A stretch of 64,000 bases of DNA, from the sequence record OR513085.1. The stretch is one strand, 5' to 3'. Every line of letters starts with the position of its first letter. The first letter of the stretch is position 1. Below are positions 41,418 to 54,456 of this stretch, one piece after another. The translations under genes and the position numbers were made by a program. The notes below the pieces were generated by a model. That model did no database searches and was not told where the DNA came from. It was given only the letters and a program-made list of their open reading frames with translations.

Positions 41418-44400
41418 ATGCTATACAAATACACAACACTCCCGGCAGATACTTCAGCGTTACCAGTAGGCGCTTTGATTCTTACAAAGAGTGGTGACGG
41501 TTACATTCTTGACAACAATAAAGTTGCAGTACCATTCAAAGGTAACGTACTTACTCCTGCATTAATTAACAGCTGGAATGACGCTGCTACTAAAGCTCAC
41601 GTACATTCTAACAAAGATACACTGGACCTTATTAGCTTGCTTTCAATTCAAAAATGGGATGAAGCTTATTCACTAAGACATACGCATTCTAACCTTGCAA
41701 CGTTAGAAACTATAACGCCTGCAAAAATTGCTGAGTGGAATAGTGCAATGAAATTTATAAAAACATTGTCTACTGAGGACTTAGATACTGTAACAGTTAA
41801 TGGAATCTACACACAGCCATCTAATGCTAATGCAACAACCGCAAATCACTATCCTATTGGTTATGCAGGAACTATAACAGTGCTAGGTAATGGTGGCAAT
41901 CACATTGTTCAGGAATATGTTAGACTTGCATCAGGTGCTACAGGTAACACTAAATATCGCAGATACTATTATGTTAGTTCAGGATGGTCTAATTGGCAAA
42001 AATCTTTAGATGATCGTGACATTACTCAGGCAATGATTGATTCTTGGAATCTTGCAGTGTCTTGGGGTAACCATGCTAATGCAGGTTATATGACTCAAAC
42101 GACTTCGGATGCTAGGTATTTAAGACTAATTGGTGGAACGTTAACTGGTGATGTTGCTGTAACTGGAGGCAAAACATTTACATTCACTGCTGCCGATGGC
42201 AAAACTTATGAAGTTAATGGCTCAGGAACTAAACATACTTCAGGTGCTAATGTGTTTTCATCAAATTTTGTAGATTCTAACACTTGGGGAATTACTCACG
42301 GAACTCAGCAAATTTTGACTAAAGACATAGCCAACAATGTTGTAAAAATTGGTAATGACACTTCACCTGCACAATTAAGAATAAAGTCTGCAGTATCTCC
42401 AAATCCAACTTCTACTGTACTTACAAACCCATCCGGTGACGTTTCAATAGTTCCAGCTTTACCGCTATTTACTAACTACCTTGAGCCTAGCTTATTAGCA
42501 AATGCTGATAGCGTAACAACAAAAGGAATTGAAGTTAACTACATTGACGCATCTACACTAAACAAACCGACAACATTAGCTAATGGAACGTTAATGACAC
42601 TAAACATTAACAACTCAGGAGGCTCGCAATTAGCAATATCAACTTCAACAGACCCAGCAGTTTATTTTAGAACTAGAACAAATTCAAATTTTGGAGGATG
42701 GACTAGGTTAGCTACAACTAACGATCTTACTGCATTAGGCCAGGACTACATTAGCAAAACTACTAACGACTTACCTGCTAACTCGGCTTGGTACGTTAAG
42801 AAAGGAACATCTGGAATTGGTGTAGTTGATACTAACTTTATAGGATTATTTGACGCTACTACAAAGGCTTATGTTACTGCAGGCGTACTAAAAATTGTTA
42901 ACGGTGGTATACAAACTGATGCAGCTTCAGTTATTGGAGGAACTACTACATTCAATGCTAACGCTACGTTCAACTCAGCTAACGTTACGTTTGCTAATGG
43001 CGCTAACAGCTCAACGTTAGCTATGGCTGGCACTAGATTAGCTATAGCATCAGGTAATGCCGGCAAAACTGGAAACATAATTGTTGATGGTGATTCGCCA
43101 ATTATTGCAAGACCTGAAACTGTAGTTAATTCTGACACTGTATTAGCAGGATTACCTGTAGGTACTCATGGTGCAGGTACATCCATTGGCGGTGTTAACG
43201 CATCCTTTATAACTTTTGGTAGCCCAGTTACTGGAACTAAAACAAACTTGATAGGTTCTACTACAGGCTTCCTTAAATTTAGATCATCATCAGGCGCTAC
43301 ATTTTCAGATTGGAAATCGTTAGTTGCTTTTGAAGACTTAACGTTAGCTACTACAGATACTTCTGTTAGCTTAACATTCAATGGCATTACAAAGACTGCA
43401 CCATTAACTACCGGAACGTTAACAAACGTAACGTACACCAACAATTGGACATTGCCATTCGGTACAACTAAAGGTTATATTGACATTGAAATGCCTACAT
43501 CTACATCAGGTGACATTATACTTACGTTAGTAGGTTATTGGGGCAATGAAAGACAATCAGGTTCAGTTAAATATCAAATTGGATTTGGTTCAAACACTAC
43601 ACAAATATACGATCAATATGCTAACATAGTTTCCGTTACTGCAGGCCAAGTTTTACTAGATAGTTATGCAGTTAACTTATCCGCAGCAATCGTGTTAGTT
43701 AATGCTAAACCTTGTTTACGTATTTGGTGCATGCGTGACGGAATTTCGCAAACTAACACAGTTAGAGCATTCATGCAAATTAAAACTAGACAAGGTACTG
43801 CATTTACTTCGTTGAACGATGTTAAGCCTCTAGCTTTCGTAGCCGAGCCTAACATTCCAACATTTATGGACCTCGATCAAGCACCTAAGTCAGTTTCATT
43901 TAACCAAATTGCAGTTAGATCATCTGCGCAAAACGATGATAATGCTGCAATTAAGCTTAAAACTGCTAGAATTTCAACATCACCAGCAAATGCAAATGGC
44001 ATTCGTGTAGTAGGTACATCAAATACTGCAGCAGGTTATCTTTATTTAGGTTCAGGTAACAACAGACTGGGTGTTGACGACGGTACTGCAAATTCACCTT
44101 TGCTTTATAATGCATCACCAGTAGTTACAAGAGACTATGCTATAGCAAATGGTTTTATATTTTCAGAAGGCAATGCTATAGGTACTATAAATGGAGTTTC
44201 TGGAGAAATTGGTCTACCTGCTAACTCATTTAAGCCAACAAAATCAGGATTCTACCGAGCTAATGGTGAAAATAACTGGGGTGCATTGTCAATGGCGATA
44301 GCACATCCTGCTAGAAGTGATGGAGGCTTTATGGCTGGTATAGCTTTTGATTATTCAGGAGCCAATGCATACTTAACAGGTAATGATTCTACAGGAGCCA

Positions 44401-47400
44401 AACTTCCTAACAAGAAAATATTAACTTCTGCGGATATCGACATATCTAAGTATTGGGAGAAATGGACAGATGGTACTAACGTAGGATTTAACAATGCTAC
44501 AGCATATTACTTCCTAGGTGCAGATGCTAATACTGCTCAGAAAGTTTATACAGGAGGTCTACTTACATCAGGCTCATTTGGTGATGGTAGTAAAATTCCA
44601 ACATTTGGAATTTACTCTAAAGGCGATATTGCTTTTGATGGAGTATTAAACAAGCTTACAGGAGAACTTAATTTACAAAAAGCTGGAGTTAACCGAATTA
44701 GAACTAGCGGGCCATCTACAGTAATATCAGCAGAAGCGGTCAATACAACTTCAGGCGTTACGGTTAGGCCTCTTGGTGATGCTAATACTGCTAACCAAAC
44801 AATGTTTGCTAAGGATATTGTACGTTACACTACAAAAGCTAGACAATTCAGTGACGTTGTAAACATTGCAAAATATGAAAACGTTGCAGCAGCTTCATTA
44901 ACACATAATGGTCCTGCAACAATAAAAATTATGTTCCCTCATAGTTTGAACACTGTAATGTGGAGCATTAAGCTTACTGTAGTTTCATATACTGGCGCTA
45001 ACAACACCAACATCAACCAGTTGCCAATGGAACTTACAATTTCTGGTTATGGTACGATGCCTGCAACGCCATCAACTAACACAAGTGCTTCAGTAGTTAA
45101 TGAATTTCCATCGTTTACTGGAGTTAAAATTGGATTAGATGATGCTACTGGCTTTAAAACGTTAATGCTTAACTTTAGTGGTACTTTAGCATATCCTAAA
45201 GTTATAATCGACCAGATAATTTATCATCACTCCGGATTAGCTAACAATACTGATATTGATGGTGCATATTCAATCACTCAGGTAGCCGATGAAACTGGAT
45301 TTACTAGCCAAACTGAAATTTTGCTAGCGCAGTTCAAAAATTATCTTGACGTGTCAAAGGCAAAAACTGCATTCCCTACTAACATGGCAAACGCAATTGA
45401 TTCGGTTGGTACTTCTCCGGATTTAGGCGCATTAGCTAACGGAAATTATTCAGGAGCAATTAGCTTAGCATCTACGAACAAACCATTTGCATCTACTGGA
45501 GGTTTGCTTTCATTTGGAGGAGGCGCACAAACTACTAGAATACTAGGTGCTCGTGATGGTTCGGATAACTTATGGTTCCAATCAGGTCCTGGTTCTGTTG
45601 CATGGAGACAAATAGCCTCAAGAGATTACATAACTACGCAATTAACAAACTACATTCCAACGTCCCAAAAAGGCGTGGCTAATGGCGTGGCTACATTAGA
45701 TGCTAATGGTTTTGTACCATCGGCACAGTTACCTAGTTATGTGGATGATGTTTTAGAATTTGCATCGTTATCAGCATTCCCGCCTACTGGAGAATCTGGT
45801 AAAATTTATATTGCTATTGACACTAACCAACAATATAGATGGTCAGGAACTACTTACGTTTTGATTAGTTCTGGTGCAGTTCAGTCAGTAAATGGTAAAA
45901 CTGGAGTCGTTGTCATTAATAAAACCGATGTAGGCTTAGACAACGTAGATAATACTGCAGATAATGCAAAGAATGTACTTAGTGCAACTAAATGGTCTAC
46001 ACCAAGAACATTTACATTAAATGGTGATATTGCGGCTACTGGTTCAGTCGATGGTTCAAGTAACGTAACGTTCACGACTACTTTGCCTAACATTGTAACT
46101 GCAGGAACTTATAAAATTACTACGGTTAACGCTAAAGGCCAAGTTACTGGAGGTTCAAACCCAACTACTTTGGCAGGTTTTGGAATTACTGATGCTATGT
46201 CAACGTCGCATCCGGCTAACGTAATTACTTCAACTGACATTGCTAACTGGAATGCTCAAGTTGCAGTAGGTAATTTTAGATCTTATGGTTTAGGAACATA
46301 CAATGCACTGACTATATCTGATTTTAACACGTTACAGACGCAACTTGAAAATGTAACTAGATTTTATGGTTCAGTTAATGCTGCAGTTACTAATGGTCCT
46401 ACTGGAATTGATTATCCTGCAGGTGTTTTTAATAGCATAAGTAATGCAGTACAATCTGTATTAGTTTTTGGAGGCCACGGTACTAACAATGGTTTAGCAT
46501 TCAGAAATAAAACTGGTACTAATACATGGGGTAACTGGGTATATGCTTGGACAGACAAACATTTTAGTCAGACAAACATAAACAATTGGAATACTGCATA
46601 TTCTTGGGGTAACCACGCATCTGCCGGTTATCTAAAAGCGGCAGATATTGCAGGACTTGTTAAAAAGACAGGTGACACTATGTCAGGCATGCTTACAATA
46701 AGCTCATCGTCACAGCCATTGGCATTACGAGGAACTTCTGCAAGTACTAACTACACTACTTATGTTAAACATGATGGTAGTGGTAACATTGGATTTATTG
46801 GTTCAAATGGAGGTGGTGCTATTGGTGACGGCGGTAATGGCGACAGATTTGTTGTTCGTGGAACTGCCGGACTTGATCTTTATTCAGATGTAGGAAATGT
46901 TACTGCAAATGGCGGTGGTATTTGGACAACTAACCATTTTGAAGCTACTGACTTAACTAATTTCTTTGAAGCATATAACAATAGCATATCAGGCGGAACT
47001 ATGACGCCTACGCAATTGCAGCTTACAAGAACAGGGTCTGCACCAATAAACATTGCAATACCTACGTTCAACCAAAATACTACTGGTAATGCAGGTACTG
47101 CAACTAAATTACAAACTGCAAGGACTATTAAAATTGGTGAACAGTCCGGACCTTTTGATGGAACTTTAAACTTAACATTTGGCCACAATGAAATGAAAGT
47201 TACGATGTGCGGTGTTAAGACTTACGGCGAATCTTGGAACTCGGTAGTAGTGCTAGATACTAGAAATGCCAGTCCATTACCATCAACAGATTTACAATCA
47301 GCAGTTACATTTGACTTTAAGCAGTCATCTGCAATTGGATTAAATGGCATTCCTGGAGTTTCTACATATGCAAGTGCTATTACTATGGCACCGTTCGTTA

Positions 47401-48521
47401 ACGACTCTGGTAATAATAATTCTGCATTTACGCTAGCTCAATCTAATGGTGTTTTAGCATTTAAAAATTATGCTAACGGTGCATGGGGTTCATGGATTAA
47501 ATTGTTAACATCTGCAGATATTTCTACAGCGTCAATTAACAACTGGAACCAGGCATATTCTTGGGGTAACCACGCATCTGCTGGATATATGTCGAAATCT
47601 ACTATAATGGGTACTGCCAACTTTAATTCATTGGCAGGCACTGGAGCTAACGGAATTTATCGTTCAGACCAAGACCCTACTGTAGCTAATGGTGTTAAGT
47701 ACAAATATTCGCCAATGTTGCATATGGGCGCTTCTGATACAATGACCCAAATGTCTATAGCTTATGCTACTGGCGAAATGTCATTCAGGGGAGGCTATAA
47801 CAACACTTGGCAAGATTGGCGTACTGCTTGGGATAACGTTAACTTACCTCAGCCAGTAACAAGAAACACTGCACAAACTATTACTGCAGATAAAACTCAT
47901 ACCGAGAATATCTTGCTTAATGGTAACAACATGATTAAGTTTTTTGGTACTGCATCAACCAGAGTAATGATACTATCTGCTGATAGAATTACTGGTTGGA
48001 CAGGTATCTCCGATGACCAAGATCGTAAAGTTGCAGGGATAGACTATGGTTCAGGTAACTATACTCTAGGTGAAATGATCTATGTTAGGAAGACTAACAA
48101 TAGCACCGGTAATGTAGGTATCAGATCAACTCCGCATGCAACGTATCCAGTTTACTTAAATGGTGATACTGCATGTACAGGTAACTTCATTGGTGTAGGA
48201 TTCTATGAGTCTTCACGTAGAGAATTGAAAACTAACATCAAAGCTTTTGAAAAATCAGGGCTTGACTTAGTTAACGAACTTGACATTGTAACGTTTGACC
48301 GTAAGGACAACGAGGAAATTAAAGATAAAATCGGAGTTATCATTGATGACACTCCATCCGAATTTGCTTCAGTTTCAGGTGATGAGGTTGACTTATACAA
48401 AACAACCTTCATTCAAGCCAAGGCTATTCAGGAACTTTCTGCTACTGTCGAAAAACAATCTGCTGAAATTGAAGAGCTAAAGAAAATGGTAAATATATTA
48501 CTAAAAGGTACGAATGGATAA
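41418..48521 (+). CDS. 2367-aa long tail fibre with pyocin-knob-like modules and C-terminal intramolecular chaperone (S74-like)
   Basis: G/T/N-rich; KGVANGVATLD..SVNGKTG motif; WSNW/WQDW knob ends; ESSRRELKTNI..AIQEL + coiled coil. Confidence 0.88.
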   Translation: MLYKYTTLPADTSALPVGALILTKSGDGYILDNNKVAVPFKGNVLTPALINSWNDAATKAHVHSNKDTLDLISLLSIQKWDEAYSLRHTHSNLATLETITPAKIAEWNSAMKFIKTLSTEDLDTVTVNGIYTQPSNANATTANHYPIGYAGTITVLGNGGNHIVQEYVRLASGATGNTKYRRYYYVSSGWSNWQKSLDDRDITQAMIDSWNLAVSWGNHANAGYMTQTTSDARYLRLIGGTLTGDVAVTGGKTFTFTAADGKTYEVNGSGTKHTSGANVFSSNFVDSNTWGITHGTQQILTKDIANNVVKIGNDTSPAQLRIKSAVSPNPTSTVLTNPSGDVSIVPALPLFTNYLEPSLLANADSVTTKGIEVNYIDASTLNKPTTLANGTLMTLNINNSGGSQLAISTSTDPAVYFRTRTNSNFGGWTRLATTNDLTALGQDYISKTTNDLPANSAWYVKKGTSGIGVVDTNFIGLFDATTKAYVTAGVLKIVNGGIQTDAASVIGGTTTFNANATFNSANVTFANGANSSTLAMAGTRLAIASGNAGKTGNIIVDGDSPIIARPETVVNSDTVLAGLPVGTHGAGTSIGGVNASFITFGSPVTGTKTNLIGSTTGFLKFRSSSGATFSDWKSLVAFEDLTLATTDTSVSLTFNGITKTAPLTTGTLTNVTYTNNWTLPFGTTKGYIDIEMPTSTSGDIILTLVGYWGNERQSGSVKYQIGFGSNTTQIYDQYANIVSVTAGQVLLDSYAVNLSAAIVLVNAKPCLRIWCMRDGISQTNTVRAFMQIKTRQGTAFTSLNDVKPLAFVAEPNIPTFMDLDQAPKSVSFNQIAVRSSAQNDDNAAIKLKTARISTSPANANGIRVVGTSNTAAGYLYLGSGNNRLGVDDGTANSPLLYNASPVVTRDYAIANGFIFSEGNAIGTINGVSGEIGLPANSFKPTKSGFYRANGENNWGALSMAIAHPARSDGGFMAGIAFDYSGANAYLTGNDSTGAKLPNKKILTSADIDISKYWEKWTDGTNVGFNNATAYYFLGADANTAQKVYTGGLLTSGSFGDGSKIPTFGIYSKGDIAFDGVLNKLTGELNLQKAGVNRIRTSGPSTVISAEAVNTTSGVTVRPLGDANTANQTMFAKDIVRYTTKARQFSDVVNIAKYENVAAASLTHNGPATIKIMFPHSLNTVMWSIKLTVVSYTGANNTNINQLPMELTISGYGTMPATPSTNTSASVVNEFPSFTGVKIGLDDATGFKTLMLNFSGTLAYPKVIIDQIIYHHSGLANNTDIDGAYSITQVADETGFTSQTEILLAQFKNYLDVSKAKTAFPTNMANAIDSVGTSPDLGALANGNYSGAISLASTNKPFASTGGLLSFGGGAQTTRILGARDGSDNLWFQSGPGSVAWRQIASRDYITTQLTNYIPTSQKGVANGVATLDANGFVPSAQLPSYVDDVLEFASLSAFPPTGESGKIYIAIDTNQQYRWSGTTYVLISSGAVQSVNGKTGVVVINKTDVGLDNVDNTADNAKNVLSATKWSTPRTFTLNGDIAATGSVDGSSNVTFTTTLPNIVTAGTYKITTVNAKGQVTGGSNPTTLAGFGITDAMSTSHPANVITSTDIANWNAQVAVGNFRSYGLGTYNALTISDFNTLQTQLENVTRFYGSVNAAVTNGPTGIDYPAGVFNSISNAVQSVLVFGGHGTNNGLAFRNKTGTNTWGNWVYAWTDKHFSQTNINNWNTAYSWGNHASAGYLKAADIAGLVKKTGDTMSGMLTISSSSQPLALRGTSASTNYTTYVKHDGSGNIGFIGSNGGGAIGDGGNGDRFVVRGTAGLDLYSDVGNVTANGGGIWTTNHFEATDLTNFFEAYNNSISGGTMTPTQLQLTRTGSAPINIAIPTFNQNTTGNAGTATKLQTARTIKIGEQSGPFDGTLNLTFGHNEMKVTMCGVKTYGESWNSVVVLDTRNASPLPSTDLQSAVTFDFKQSSAIGLNGIPGVSTYASAITMAPFVNDSGNNNSAFTLAQSNGVLAFKNYANGAWGSWIKLLTSADISTASINNWNQAYSWGNHASAGYMSKSTIMGTANFNSLAGTGANGIYRSDQDPTVANGVKYKYSPMLHMGASDTMTQMSIAYATGEMSFRGGYNNTWQDWRTAWDNVNLPQPVTRNTAQTITADKTHTENILLNGNNMIKFFGTASTRVMILSADRITGWTGISDDQDRKVAGIDYGSGNYTLGEMIYVRKTNNSTGNVGIRSTPHATYPVYLNGDTACTGNFIGVGFYESSRRELKTNIKAFEKSGLDLVNELDIVTFDRKDNEEIKDKIGVIIDDTPSEFASVSGDEVDLYKTTFIQAKAIQELSATVEKQSAEIEELKKMVNILLKGTNG

Positions 48522-49804: not shown

Positions 49805-50914
49805 ATGAGCATAAAATACGGCTTAAATCAATTTAAAAATACTGCAGATAACAGTACAGAGGTAGTAATTGACAATGGGCTACTTTATGAAATTGGCATA
49901 CCAATTGGCGAAGTTAACGAAGCTACAAACAACATTTACGTAACTGATGCTTCTGGCAAAAAGATACGAGTGCCTATACATGATGCAATAATTCAGTCAA
50001 TTCAGTTAATGTCAGATGATGTTAAAAGCCAATTTAGGTCTAGCGTTTTTGGTGAAATAGATTTATTGCCAGCATCAATTTCTGGAGCTATGCCATTCAT
50101 GCTAACTTCTGCCGATTTTGGTAAGTCTGTAGATGTCATAATTTATGGCAAAAACATGAATATGCACGATACTGCAAATACTAAAGTTGCATTAGTCGAT
50201 AAAAATTCAGGTGCTGAGATTATAGCCACTACCTGGAATACGCTTAATATCAACCAAATGCAGGCTACTTTTAAAATTCCTGCAAAATGTAAAGCTACGG
50301 CATTCTTAATTTCGATAAAATATGGCGATATGCTGGCAGAATCTACTGCCGAAATTATAGTAAATTCTGCAGTAACTTTAGAACCTGTAGAACTTAACTT
50401 TAACAAATTCGGCGAGGAATATTGTATAGCTACTACACCAAAGTCCATAAAATTTGCACCGCTTTTCAACAACAATATTGGCGCAGATTCAGTGTCTGTA
50501 ACATCTGAAGCTATAGACTGTACAAAGAATTTCATATTGTCAGCAGACTTAGCAATCAACACTAAGGCAGGATCATCACTTAATGCAATTGACTTAACTA
50601 GATCAGGCTTTGGTTTAGGATATGCTGGTCAACCAGGAGAAGTTAGATTTGACGGAATTAACATGGACTTACGTGATTTTAAGCCAAGGTTCAACACTTT
50701 CCTAACAAAAGACAATATCAAACATGTCAAATTCATAAAGCAAGGCAATTCGATTTACAAACTGCTGTATTCAGATAGCAACGTTTATACATTCAAAACT
50801 ATATTGCTTAGCGACTCTGAACCTATTGCAATCTGTGCATCTATGCAAAGACTTGATGATAGCGGAAGCATCATAAACGTATCTTACAACAACATAACTT
50901 TAAAAACATTCTAA
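49805..50914 (+). CDS. Putative structural protein (beta-rich)
   Basis: 369-aa ORF in the late operon. Confidence 0.6.
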   Translation: MSIKYGLNQFKNTADNSTEVVIDNGLLYEIGIPIGEVNEATNNIYVTDASGKKIRVPIHDAIIQSIQLMSDDVKSQFRSSVFGEIDLLPASISGAMPFMLTSADFGKSVDVIIYGKNMNMHDTANTKVALVDKNSGAEIIATTWNTLNINQMQATFKIPAKCKATAFLISIKYGDMLAESTAEIIVNSAVTLEPVELNFNKFGEEYCIATTPKSIKFAPLFNNNIGADSVSVTSEAIDCTKNFILSADLAINTKAGSSLNAIDLTRSGFGLGYAGQPGEVRFDGINMDLRDFKPRFNTFLTKDNIKHVKFIKQGNSIYKLLYSDSNVYTFKTILLSDSEPIAICASMQRLDDSGSIINVSYNNITLKTF

Positions 50915-50918
50915 CAAA

Positions 50919-51341
50919 ATGGCAAATTTTTTAATTGCATACAAAAAGACTGGAGGCTTTGAAGGTGGCTGGAACCACGTAAAAGGCGATACTGGCGGAG
51001 AAACATATTGCGGAATTGCAAGAAACTATTGGCCTAAATGGGCTGGCTGGGCAATCATAGATTCCAAAAAGCCAATAAAAACAGGCACAATTTTTAAAGA
51101 CAATGTTAAACTTGAAGAACTAGTACATGCATTTTATAAAGCCAATTTCTGGGATGTAGTTGGCGGTGATAGCATAGAGGATCAGACTACTGCAAACACT
51201 CTTTATGATTTTGGTGTTAACGCAGGAACTTCAAGATCAGTTAAGCAAATTCAAGGAGCTTTAGGCTTAACACAAACAGGCAAAGTAGACAAAGCTTTAG
51301 TTGAAGCTATCAACAATCCAACTAAACATTTATTAAAATAA
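50919..51341 (+). CDS. Endolysin, glycoside hydrolase family 108 (no C-terminal PG-binding domain)
   Basis: EGGWNHVKGDTGGETYCGI, FYKANFW, LYDFGVNAG..VKQIQ. Confidence 0.88.
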   Translation: MANFLIAYKKTGGFEGGWNHVKGDTGGETYCGIARNYWPKWAGWAIIDSKKPIKTGTIFKDNVKLEELVHAFYKANFWDVVGGDSIEDQTTANTLYDFGVNAGTSRSVKQIQGALGLTQTGKVDKALVEAINNPTKHLLK

Positions 51342-51348
51342 AAAGACA

Positions 51349-52017
51349 ATGAAGAACATATTTTTTAGCATGATGTTAGGACTTTTTGCCCTAACATCGT
51401 GTAACAATAAAAACGCTAGCAACGTTAAGCATGAGGCAGATTCATTAACACTAATAGACACTGCATTTATTGTAGTAGATTCTGTAACAAAGGATTCGGT
51501 TCCAATCTACATTGAGCAGGAGGCTTACGATAATAAAGCACAAATTGCTAAGGAAGAGTTTAACAGACTTAAAAAATCTGCAGATTCACTTTACAACATT
51601 ACGCTGTCGCTTAAACACTTAGAAGGCCAGTATGCTACAATTATTGCAACAGGTAAAGCTGACTACAAAAGCCTAGATACTAAAAAAATCACGTTAGCAC
51701 AATATAAAGCAAAACTTAAGGCTAACTTAGAACGCAAAATTGTCAAAAAGTCATTTGATGATGAGGTCATAGCTTCGCCAATATTTACTGAAGCAGACTC
51801 TGCAAAAGACAAATTTATAGTTTATCTTGGTGTTATAGAAAAAATTGAAACTGAGATCATACCTACGTTAAAAGAGCAGGAACTTGAAATTTCAAGATCG
51901 ACTTTACATAAAAAGTTAGTAGTCGCAAATGCACAATATTACTTAAACATTACATTACGTAACCCTAGCCAGGACAAATTCCTTAAAGGCTGGACACGAA
52001 GAGCCTGGTCACAATAA
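51349..52017 (+). CDS. Lipoprotein in the lysis cassette (spanin-like)
   Basis: Lipobox LTSC; coiled coil. Confidence 0.55.
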   Translation: MKNIFFSMMLGLFALTSCNNKNASNVKHEADSLTLIDTAFIVVDSVTKDSVPIYIEQEAYDNKAQIAKEEFNRLKKSADSLYNITLSLKHLEGQYATIIATGKADYKSLDTKKITLAQYKAKLKANLERKIVKKSFDDEVIASPIFTEADSAKDKFIVYLGVIEKIETEIIPTLKEQELEISRSTLHKKLVVANAQYYLNITLRNPSQDKFLKGWTRRAWSQ

Positions 52018-52051
52018 AAGCAGGTACATCTTTTCACTTTTGAGTGAAGCT

Positions 52052-52059
52052 AATAAATA
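52052..52059 (+). promoter_or_regulatory. Late promoter AATAAATA
   Basis: Upstream of the PAS gene. Confidence 0.5.
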
Positions 52060-52104
52060 CTAAAACTTTTAAATAAACAAAATCCAGAATAAAACCAAAT
52101 AACT

Positions 52105-52713
52105 ATGTCTATACTACAAGACTACAGCGTGGTTATAGGAAGCATTCTAGTTATTGTCGCTACATTTTTGAAAAAGGGTAATGTTCAACAACTCAATCAG
52201 TATATTAACACAATTAATATGCTTAGAGTTGACTTACTTGCACTCAAAAAAGACAACGCAGATATTGCATCCGACATACGTAAGTTACAGGCCGAATTAC
52301 ACGACAAGGATCGTTTGGTTGCATTATTGGAGGCAACTTCTTGGGACTTACCGTTTCCTTATTGGCTTAAGGACATGCAACATAACATGGTGTACATTAA
52401 TGCCAAGTATGAAAAAACATTTAACGTTAGGTCGATTGATTATGTTGGCAAAAAAGACCTAGACGTCTGGCCAGCAGAAATTGCCGAAAAGTTCAAAGCT
52501 AATGACCAAAAGATGATGGACGGTGACGACGAGTTTATAATTTCGCAAACCGAAGTCGATGGTTTTGTAGTTATAAAATGGAAACGTTGGGCTGGCAGCA
52601 TCTTAATTGGAGTTGCAGGAATGTGCATACCTATCGGAGTATTCCATAATTTCACGCAAGATGTCTTGAACGTAGTTAATCAGAATAACAGCAATGAGCG
52701 AACAAGAAACTAA
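52105..52713 (+). CDS. TM-coiled coil-PAS domain protein (holin/lysis regulator candidate)
   Basis: TM VVIGSILVIVATFL; LPFPYWLKD..YINAKYEKTF..VGKKDLDVWPAEIAEKFKANDQ (PAS_4 pattern). Confidence 0.75.
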   Translation: MSILQDYSVVIGSILVIVATFLKKGNVQQLNQYINTINMLRVDLLALKKDNADIASDIRKLQAELHDKDRLVALLEATSWDLPFPYWLKDMQHNMVYINAKYEKTFNVRSIDYVGKKDLDVWPAEIAEKFKANDQKMMDGDDEFIISQTEVDGFVVIKWKRWAGSILIGVAGMCIPIGVFHNFTQDVLNVVNQNNSNERTRN

Positions 52714-53092
52714 CACAGAATACACAATGCCGCAAGAGGAAACTACAACCAGCGGCATTTTAAATAACATGGAGCTTGCTCAAAAAAATCCTAGCTTATG
52801 GCTTTGGATAGGAATTATCATAGCAATCGTAGCAATTTTTGGCTATTTTACAAGATCACAGGAACTTAGAATCGACGAGGTTAAAGCTGAACGTGATACT
52901 TGGAAAGGCAAATTTGAAGAAGTATCAAAAGCTTACAATGAATTATTGATGAGCCGATACTACGGAAATGTTACTACTATGCCAGGAGTTCCTCAAGTTC
53001 CTCATGATTCAGTTGGCAAATTCCAAAACCAGGATGCAGTAAGACCAAAAGAACTAGAAGACAAAACGAAAACAAATACTGACAATGATTAA
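52694..53092 (+). CDS. Single-TM coiled-coil protein (holin or i-spanin candidate)
   Basis: LWLWIGIIIAIVAIFGYF followed by coiled coil. Confidence 0.55.
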   Translation: MSEQETNTEYTMPQEETTTSGILNNMELAQKNPSLWLWIGIIIAIVAIFGYFTRSQELRIDEVKAERDTWKGKFEEVSKAYNELLMSRYYGNVTTMPGVPQVPHDSVGKFQNQDAVRPKELEDKTKTNTDND

Positions 53093-53717
53093 AACAATGA
53101 AAAGCGCGATAGTTATTACAACAATTGCGCTTTTTACGTTTGGATGCGGTGCACGCAAAGTCGATCTTTCAAAACATAAGGAAGTTGAAACTACTGAGTA
53201 CACTAAAGAAAACGTAAAGCAAACAGAAAGTAACGTACAAACTAACGTTACGCAGAGCGAAAAGAACGTAACTACTAAACAAACAGAAGCTACGAAGAGC
53301 GAAAAGGCTGATAATTCTGAATTAAACATAACAATTGAACCTACAGAAAAGGGTGAAGTTGCAGAGTATGAATTTGTATTTGGTGACAAAGTTTTCAAAG
53401 GTAAAACGTCAGGTAAGCTAATAGTTTCCAACAAAACAGGAACTAACGTTAAGGACGAAAAGAACGTAACTAACGAAAATGCTAACAACGAAAAGAATGC
53501 TAGCGACAATAACGTAAGTAACACAAAAGCTTCAGAAGCTAACAAAGATTCAGGCTCTAGCGAAAAGAAAGTTGAAGACAAATCTAAAAGTTCTGACAAA
53601 AAAGAACCTTTTATTTTCAATTTCATGTCAGGCTTAGCTATAGTAGCAGGCGTGGCTATACTAGGATTCTTGGCGTACTTAATACTACTTAGATTTGGAT
53701 TGATTAAAAGGAAGTAA
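53085..53717 (+). CDS. Unimolecular spanin-like protein
   Basis: N-terminal lipoprotein signal (FTFGC), polar linker, C-terminal TM GLAIVAGVAILGFLAYLIL + basic tail. Confidence 0.7.
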   Translation: MIKTMKSAIVITTIALFTFGCGARKVDLSKHKEVETTEYTKENVKQTESNVQTNVTQSEKNVTTKQTEATKSEKADNSELNITIEPTEKGEVAEYEFVFGDKVFKGKTSGKLIVSNKTGTNVKDEKNVTNENANNEKNASDNNVSNTKASEANKDSGSSEKKVEDKSKSSDKKEPFIFNFMSGLAIVAGVAILGFLAYLILLRFGLIKRK

Positions 53718-53736
53718 GCTTTAAAAGAAAGTCAAC

Positions 53737-53763
53737 AAAAACCGGCAAATTTTGCCGGTTTTT
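53737..53763. terminator. Terminator
   Basis: AAAAACCGGCAAA / TTTGCCGGTTTTT. Confidence 0.8.
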
Positions 53764-53828
53764 GTTGTGAAGTGCTCAAATTGACTGGCAAATTTGTATA
53801 ATAAACTTACAATATAAAACAATATATT

Positions 53829-54383
53829 ATGAGCAACTTAACAGACAAGCCGGATAACAAGCGGTTTGCAGACAACAAAATCATTCACTCGTTATTCCGT
53901 AACTATATAGGAATTTATCATTACGGAGGACCGTCACCAAAATCGCCAAATGCTAAGCAATATAAAAAATTTAGCGAGCATGGATATCAAATGGTTAGCA
54001 GAGAGGACGGCAAACCTTCACATTTTTATATTTTCGACCCTACAGATGATCCTAACAACTATTTTAGGTTACAGATTATTTGGAGTTTTAGTACAATTAA
54101 TCGTATACTTAAACATTATGATTTGTCAGTAACTTTTGAATTTATTGACGTAGACTATTGGCAATTCTTTTATTCGGAGTTTATAAACAATCCTGTAGAT
54201 GAATCTAAACGTTACAAATTTGAAGAAGGTTTAAGAGGCTGTGCATCACAAACATGGGGATTAGCATCATATGGCTATACAGTCAATGATGTTTTAGCTT
54301 TTGAAAAAGTTCAAGCATCTAAATACAGACTTAACAAAAATAAACTCGGCACGCTAAGCACTGAAGAAAATCAGGCGTCTTAG
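53829..54383 (+). CDS. Hypothetical protein
   Basis: 184-aa ORF between terminators. Confidence 0.65.
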   Translation: MSNLTDKPDNKRFADNKIIHSLFRNYIGIYHYGGPSPKSPNAKQYKKFSEHGYQMVSREDGKPSHFYIFDPTDDPNNYFRLQIIWSFSTINRILKHYDLSVTFEFIDVDYWQFFYSEFINNPVDESKRYKFEEGLRGCASQTWGLASYGYTVNDVLAFEKVQASKYRLNKNKLGTLSTEENQAS

Positions 54384-54425
54384 CCGGCATTGTTGCTATC
54401 ATGTCGACTGAGATGCAACCGGTTT

Positions 54426-54456
54426 AAGCCCAGCACTTTTAGTGCTGGGCTTTTTT
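54426..54456 (+). terminator. Intrinsic terminator
   Basis: AAGCCCAGCACT / AGTGCTGGGCTTTTTT. Confidence 0.85.

Follow-up and report, generated by a model that had tools for sequence, protein, structure and literature searches.

A membrane-anchored PAS domain protein family associated with lysin genes in phages of Bacteroidota

Phage lysis in the Bacteroidota is poorly understood, including that by the abundant marine flavophages and by the relatives of the gut crAss-like phages. The slot immediately upstream of the lysin gene is the classical holin position. It is occupied in this way in lambda (S105/S107) and phage 21 (S68/S71), whose holins have two to three transmembrane domains (TMDs) in ~70–107 aa, a first helix with the N-terminus outside, Gly-rich packing helices and no folded cytoplasmic domain. 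This first helix is translocated only when the N-terminus is free of positive charge. The holin T of T4 is built differently, with a single TMD and a large globular domain which regulates triggering. It has its N-terminus inside and the globular domain in the periplasm, and its gene t comes after the tail-fibre genes 37/38. Separate antiholin genes are known as well (T4 rI/rIII, P1 lydB, P2 lysA), and antiholins act on one specific holin. The T4 proteins RI, SAR-anchored and periplasmic, and RIII, soluble, are such separate small lysis-timing proteins, passing a signal to the holin.

Two further systems are related to the protein described here through their PAS domains. ArcB-type sensor kinases have an input module with a TM helix, a zipper and a cytoplasmic PAS domain, in this order, and carry in addition DHp/catalytic, receiver and Hpt domains and redox-active Cys residues. 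VqmA-Phage, from the vibriophage VP882, is a phage-encoded PAS protein through which a small-molecule signal leads to the killing of the host. As a soluble HTH transcription factor, VqmA controls the lysis-lysogeny switch.

The window is the whole stretch of 64,000 nucleotides from record OR513085.1 that was analyzed. Its region 50900–54400 had 100% identity with Chryseobacterium phage MA9V-2 (OR513085.1) and 89.7% with MA9V-1. MA9V-2 is a lytic jumbo myovirus with a genome of 218.5 kb, infecting C. indologenes MA9. The gene in focus, MA9V2_249 (52105–52713, + strand), is an ORF encoding a bitopic protein of 202 aa. In OR513085.1 it was deposited as a “regulatory protein”, with a PpsR/AppA PAS note, and the MA9V-2 paper discusses neither a holin, nor a PAS protein, nor MA9V2_249. 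No paralogs of it were found in MA9V-2. Just upstream of the window, at 153006–154172 of the MA9V-2 record (L086:6006–7172), lies a gene with the annotation RNA-guided endonuclease, TnpB family.

The lysis cassette comprises five genes, all on the + strand. The first encodes a GH108 endolysin of 140 aa (50919–51341), recognized by Glyco_hydro_108 (E = 8e-17) and by the endolysin family phrog_315 (E = 2e-17), having an E-G-G-W motif near the N-terminus and neither a signal peptide nor a TMD. Directly 3' of it, a lipoprotein-like ORF of 222 aa (51349–52017) matched PG_binding_3 (E = 6e-6, 26.9 vs. 24.6 bits), its last ~36 aa corresponding to the second half of this domain. The N-terminus of the same ORF matched the PG1828 lipoprotein family below the cutoff (E = 3e-5). 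It is as if a lipoprotein had captured the wall-binding module of a lysin, and the ORF is kept in the loci L004 and L005.

MA9V2_249 is the third gene, followed by orf132 (52694–53092, 132 aa) and orf210 (53085–53717, 210 aa). The orf132 product has a very acidic, Thr-rich N-tail of 34 aa, one TMD (aa 35–53) and thereafter a basic, coiled-coil-like segment. This architecture is kept in L004, L005 and L006 at 18–25% identity, and orf132 is a candidate holin, or a candidate partner of the PAS protein. The orf210 product is u-spanin-like, with an N-terminal lipobox (Cys21), a long, low-complexity middle part rich in K/E/N/T, and a C-terminal TMD (aa 184–202). Its lipobox and C-terminal TMD, which constitute the u-spanin architecture, are kept in L004 and L005 at ~30% identity. 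Neither orf132 nor orf210 matched a family in Pfam, PHROGs or NCBIfam, or any named defense family. The two genes overlap by 8 nt. A perfect hairpin of 16 bp, GC-cored and flanked by T/A runs, follows at 53733–53767, likely as the terminator closing the cassette. A second GC-cored hairpin (12 bp, with a T-run) was found at 54426–54452, after the ORF next to orf210, and the two hairpins are likely terminators bounding the lysis unit. The order of the five genes is kept in two metagenomic relatives, whose PAS proteins are ~65% identical. Further upstream, a fibre-like ORF of 2367 aa (41418–48521, +) lies ~2.4 kb from the cassette, with three small ORFs between.

The preliminary description had placed the PAS gene between the endolysin/lipoprotein genes and the TMD/u-spanin genes, as found here. 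It had also noted an overlap with the next gene, and this part depends on the start codon of orf132: with the deposited start (ATG 52694) the two genes overlap by 20 nt, and an in-frame ATG at 52727 would abolish the overlap. In relatives, the junction between the PAS gene and the next gene stayed tight, ranging from a 1-nt overlap to a 10-nt gap.

Three modules make up MA9V2_249. A Gly-rich membrane helix at the N-terminus is followed by a heptad coiled coil, and this by a genuine PAS domain. The membrane helix (aa ~7–23; 52123–52173, +) was recognized by hydropathy, with a Kyte-Doolittle maximum of 1.9 in a 19-residue window, and as helix 4–22 in the AlphaFold model, which had nine homologs as input. 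Before the helix there is an acidic tail of 6 aa without Lys/Arg, and after it Lys-Lys. The coiled coil or leucine zipper (aa 26–76; 52180–52332, +) was modeled as one single helix over exactly these residues. The family-averaged hydrophobicity of this region had a period of 3.5 residues, with a power of 26.7 vs. 5.8 ± 5.7 for shuffled sequences, a value equalled by 1% of the shuffles, and in one heptad register 80% of the a/d positions were hydrophobic. In Pfam, this region gave generic zipper matches only.

The PAS domain (aa ~80–178; 52342–52638, +) was recognized by PAS_4 (PF08448, clan PAS_Fold) with E = 1.3e-7 and 32.3 bits, vs. a gathering score of 23.1, the match spanning just model positions 4–65 of 110, i.e., the N-terminal 60%. 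AlphaFold gave the canonical topology βA-βB-αC-αD-αE-αF-βG-βH-βI at aa 86–176, with pLDDT values of 82–89. All of the 50 top Foldseek matches listed against the PDB were PAS or PAS-containing proteins (best E = 2e-5), among them BvgS, Rv1364c, VqmA (6ide, 6kju), PpsR and FixL, and the top matches were PAS domains of kinases. A reading of aa 162–180 as a second TMD was ruled out, this segment being the final β-hairpin of the PAS fold in the AlphaFold model. After the PAS domain only ~22 aa remain, which are disordered and not conserved. No output domain, kinase or other, was found in MA9V2_249, and Pfam gave no HisKA/HATPase matches. The preliminary description is thus upheld for the TM helix, the coiled coil and the missing kinase or output domain, and what it had called a PAS-like domain is a true PAS domain.

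The module order is the same as in the input part of ArcB, and the NCBIfam ArcB model matched positions 109–228 weakly (E = 1.4e-3, 16.8 bits vs. a cutoff of 838). Unlike the ArcB-type kinases, the PAS protein has no receiver or Hpt domain, and the redox-active Cys residues are not conserved. An identity as an ArcB-like sensor histidine kinase was rejected, the DHp and catalytic ATPase domains being absent after the PAS domain. With VqmA-Phage it shares the PAS domain and the phage origin, and it differs in being membrane-anchored, in having no DNA-binding domain and in its gene being part of a lytic phage's lysis cassette.

When 1.8 billion representative proteins were searched with a profile, 11,775 matches resulted, mostly long multi-PAS proteins aligning over the PAS part only. 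Among the best 150 of these matches (50% clustering), ~50 proteins had 170–230 aa, and their alignment began at the membrane helix and ran through the whole PAS domain. The family is of considerable size, its members having ~170–220 aa with a TMD, a coiled coil and a PAS domain. Its signature near strand A is P-x-P-x-W-x-K, and the family-invariant positions of the PAS domain are P83, W87, K89, N99, D118, D134, K158 and G172. Of these, P83, W87 and G172 were invariant also in the unbiased profile-derived alignment (A3). To find loci, public collections were scanned with a degenerate DNA pattern for P-x-P-x-W-L-K-D-x4-M-x3-N, which inflates the apparent conservation of its motif residues within the recovered set. 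Loci recovered by the scan were 17 viral, 4 genomic and 52 metagenomic, and the members in them were verified by HMM. The genomic members were all from Bacteroidota (Maribacter, Cyclobacteriaceae, Flavobacteriaceae and a Bacteroidetes MAG), as were all identifiable hosts of the family. The cultured phages carrying it were only MA9V-1, MA9V-2 and the crAss-like Cellulophaga phage phi14:2. Relatives of 220–280 aa had helical C-terminal extensions only, and no Rosetta-stone fusions were found among them.

We read the orientation in the membrane from the charges around the helix, on the basis of the positive-inside rule. In 91 unique full-length members the N-terminal tail had a median of 5 aa. 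It was free of Lys/Arg in 67 members, and 67 had at least one Asp/Glu in it; after the helix, 83 had two to four Lys/Arg within 12 residues. From this charge distribution alone, the predicted topology is N-out/C-in, with the coiled coil and the PAS domain in the cytoplasm, and the homology to PAS arrays of the cytoplasmic type is in line with such a placement. In the inverse topology (N-in/C-out) the coiled coil and the PAS-like domain would be periplasmic, and the protein i-spanin-like or RI-like. The i-spanins also have an N-terminal TMD plus a coiled coil and a similar size, and the weakly hydrophobic, Gly/Ala/Ser-rich helix resembles SAR anchors, for which the positive-inside rule can mislead (e.g., lambda Rz). 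SAR and i-spanin anchors have a basic N-tail, however, and the charges of the family run the other way. In addition, the domain is homologous to PAS domains of the cytoplasmic type (PAS_4, kinase PAS arrays) and not to PDC/Cache, no lipoprotein partner recurs, the PAS gene is mostly upstream of the lysin, and with orf210 a u-spanin-like gene is already present in the window cassette. Together, these points make the inverse topology very improbable. An i-spanin identity was rejected on the opposite predicted topology, the lack of a recurrent lipoprotein neighbor and the absence of matches to the PHROG spanin models.

Across the family, the membrane helix is moderately hydrophobic, with a mean of 2.8 Gly per 17 residues and 43% G/A/S/T, and a central Gly-Gly is present in 72–76% of the members. 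The conservation of its sequence suggests that the helices pack specifically against each other and do more than anchor the protein. In phi14:2, gp089 (L002:5962–6591) has the N-terminus Met-Lys-Met, resembling the dual-start motif of lambda S, and a few other members have a second Met after Lys/Arg ahead of the helix.

Only one kind of neighbor recurs beside the family members, a peptidoglycan hydrolase, whatever its class. The lineages were de-replicated at 90% identity (n = 47), and in 15 of them a Pfam-recognized lysin was found within ±2 same-strand genes. At one lysin per 100 genes, ~1.9 lineages would be expected (binomial P ~ 2e-10), and with many contigs truncated the enrichment is a lower bound. 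The lysins belonged to seven Pfam families: GH108, GH19, GH24, Amidase_2, Amidase_3, Peptidase_M15_3 and M15_4. Ten lineages had the lysin at position +1 and two at −1, and in the three lineages of the window clade it was at −2, so the usual order is PAS gene followed by lysin. The two genes either overlapped, by 1–40 nt, or were separated by no more than 63 nt, a tight translational linkage. For example, phi14:2 gp089 overlaps by 4 nt the downstream GH19 glycoside hydrolase (endolysin in RefSeq). A Maribacter prophage has a GH24 phage lysozyme as the downstream gene, a Cyclobacteriaceae MAG an Amidase_2, and other loci a Peptidase_M15_3, M15_4/VanY or Amidase_3.

PAS proteins sharing at least 60% identity can differ in their +1 gene, which is GH19, M15_3, DUF5675 or a 195-aa protein. 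This looks like lysin-module swapping, and a non-specific holin-lysin relationship would lead one to expect such differences. An endolysin chaperone or anchor, similar to Ms6 Gp1, was ruled out, since a specific lysin-binding role is implausible with non-homologous partner lysins. DUF5675 (phrog_1501) and the 195-aa family (phrog_24921) occupy the lysin slot at L021:219–632 (−), L031:948–1361 (+) and L013:5515–6096 (−), and are candidates for new lysins. These two and a 174-aa neighbor had no PDB sequence matches of value and no profile similarity to the lysins of the same slot, and AlphaFold, used on them in the same lysin test, gave a poor model (pLDDT 62) without a fold match.

The family is best explained as specific to phages and prophages of Bacteroidota and as a component of their lysis cassettes, and a role of the PAS protein in lysis is very probable. 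Alternatively, it could be a late-expressed sensor or decoy in the membrane whose only tie to the lysis genes is a common operon, and that might, for example, form heterodimers with multi-PAS sensor kinases of the host and alter their signaling, or serve in superinfection exclusion. The PAS domain is indeed nearest to the repeats of very long multi-PAS proteins (E down to 1e-49), and in 26 of the 47 lineages, about half, no recognizable or candidate lysin was near, partly from short contigs. Outside the lysis context there is also a homolog in Brevundimonas phage Kikimora (L003:4953–5453), a soluble PAS protein without membrane helix and with 25% identity (alignment A1), which adjoins a tRNA cluster and PhoH. 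We consider such a non-lysis role improbable: it would hardly account for an enrichment beside lysins from seven non-homologous families, with frames that overlap, the Gly-Gly motif of the membrane helix is conserved, and the PAS protein had no match to the PADLOC defense families.

The comparative genomics strengthens the link to lysis well beyond what the preliminary description had to go on, and non-homologous endolysins near the PAS gene in 15 of 47 lineages indicate that its proposal of a holin or antiholin was the right class of explanation. Between the two, we tentatively favor the PAS protein as the holin of the cassette, or as an obligatory subunit of the holin, giving this reading a little less than an even chance. 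The partner lysins have neither signal nor SAR sequences, so a hole-former is needed. The PAS protein has one TM helix and its gene adjoins the lysin gene, which is mostly directly downstream and overlapping. Of the lineages covered by at least 1.5 kb on either side (n = 16), 12 had no multi-TMD holin-like gene within 2 kb; eight of these had single-TMD genes only, and four had none. No classical holin is annotated elsewhere in MA9V-2. The phage encodes several small ORFs with two TMDs outside the cassette, and a remote holin, as in T4, is thereby a possibility.

The PAS protein matched no named holin, antiholin or spanin family. For holins this holds at E ≤ 1 with the whole protein (Pfam, PHROGs, NCBIfam) and at E ≤ 10 with the N-terminal modules of ten members. 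Its likeness to the lambda S and phage 21 holins is in the N-out first helix, the Gly-rich packing helix and the gene position, and is not accompanied by homology. The T4 analogy drawn in the preliminary description, with T and RI, stands for the architecture: T and the PAS protein both have ~200–218 aa, a single TMD and a large globular domain, and the window cassette is downstream of a fibre-like ORF as t is of the fibre genes. It fails for sequence and orientation. Homology to T4 T (class III; PF11031, Phage_holin_T) was rejected, with an hhalign probability of 0.1% and no Pfam match, and T is N-in with a periplasmic domain, whereas the PAS protein is predicted to be N-out with its PAS domain in the cytoplasm. 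The T4 T structures 6PXE, 6PX4 and 6PSK were absent among the 50 top PDB fold matches listed. Predicted structures of T-type holins from Proteus phages matched weakly (E = 4e-3 and 0.35), reflecting the shared plan of a TM helix, a long helix and an α/β domain. We know of no holin with one weakly hydrophobic helix of 17 residues, a cytoplasmic domain of ~180 aa and the N-terminus outside.

As an antiholin or timing regulator, the PAS protein would bind the true holin through its helix or coiled coil, and the state of its PAS domain would delay or license triggering. The true holin would then be orf132 in the window, multi-TMD proteins at other loci, or a remote gene. The synteny with lysis cassettes fits this as well as it fits a holin. 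The gene is translationally coupled to orf132, the architecture of which is kept in the window clade, and small, classical-looking genes with two to three TMDs adjoin the PAS gene in at least five lineages (L019, L010/L017, L007, the L039 group and L049). Furthermore, the combination of PAS domain and coiled coil is typical of signal-input modules, and the input part of ArcB is echoed weakly, below the threshold. RI and RIII are precedents for separate small proteins of this kind, although neither has a PAS domain or homology to the PAS protein. Against an antiholin speaks that no membrane-protein neighbor is conserved family-wide, the neighbors being in unrelated clusters or absent. The multi-TMD neighbors matched no named holin, spanin or defense family. 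The 12 well-covered lineages without a multi-TMD gene within 2 kb and the usual slot of the PAS gene immediately upstream of the lysin, the position of a holin, point in the same direction. We see the antiholin as possible but rather unlikely.

The PAS protein is best read as a single-pass protein of the inner membrane, with the short acidic N-terminus predicted outside and the zipper and PAS domain in the cytoplasm. If it is the holin, dimers formed through the coiled coil and PAS domain would build up harmlessly in the membrane, late in infection. The cytoplasmic module would set the time at which the Gly-rich helices would pack into higher oligomers, with a critical concentration, a ligand or the energy state as candidate triggers. 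Through the lesion so formed, the signal-less endolysin would gain access to the wall, and the u-spanin-like protein would then break the outer membrane.

What the PAS domain might sense can be narrowed down by its conserved residues. The family lacks any conserved His or Cys, which argues against a His-ligated haem, against Cys chemistry of the LOV/PYP type and against Cys redox switching of the ArcB type. The polar conserved residues K89, N99, D118, D134 and K158 could line a pocket. A flavin or another small molecule may be the ligand. The PAS domain might also be purely an oligomerization module. A metabolic or redox cue as the lysis trigger, put forward in the preliminary description, is at present a hypothesis. 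In its full form, with the family as a new holin class whose triggering is set by a cytoplasmic PAS domain binding a metabolite or cofactor, we find it speculative and on the unlikely side. If true, Bacteroidota phages, including crAss-like ones, would read the physiological state of the host for their lysis timing, beyond holin concentration alone.

A full-text literature search for PAS together with holins, lysis cassettes, Cellulophaga phages or crAss-like phages returned nothing relevant. Papers on Bacteroidota phages describe lysins “surrounded by TMD proteins”, with the holins not identified, and the PAS family is not mentioned in the surveys of lysis genes from flavophages and Crassvirales (PMC8776804; PMC10136315). 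Within the literature searched, the family and its association with lysis appear undescribed. It would offer a recognizable lysis marker for annotating phages of Bacteroidota. A holin-class protein with a classical signal-input domain would be, to our knowledge, the first case. Three cultured phage-host pairs carry the family, phi14:2 on Cellulophaga baltica and both MA9V-1 and MA9V-2 on C. indologenes MA9, and it would become directly testable whether an intracellular cue can tune lysis timing.
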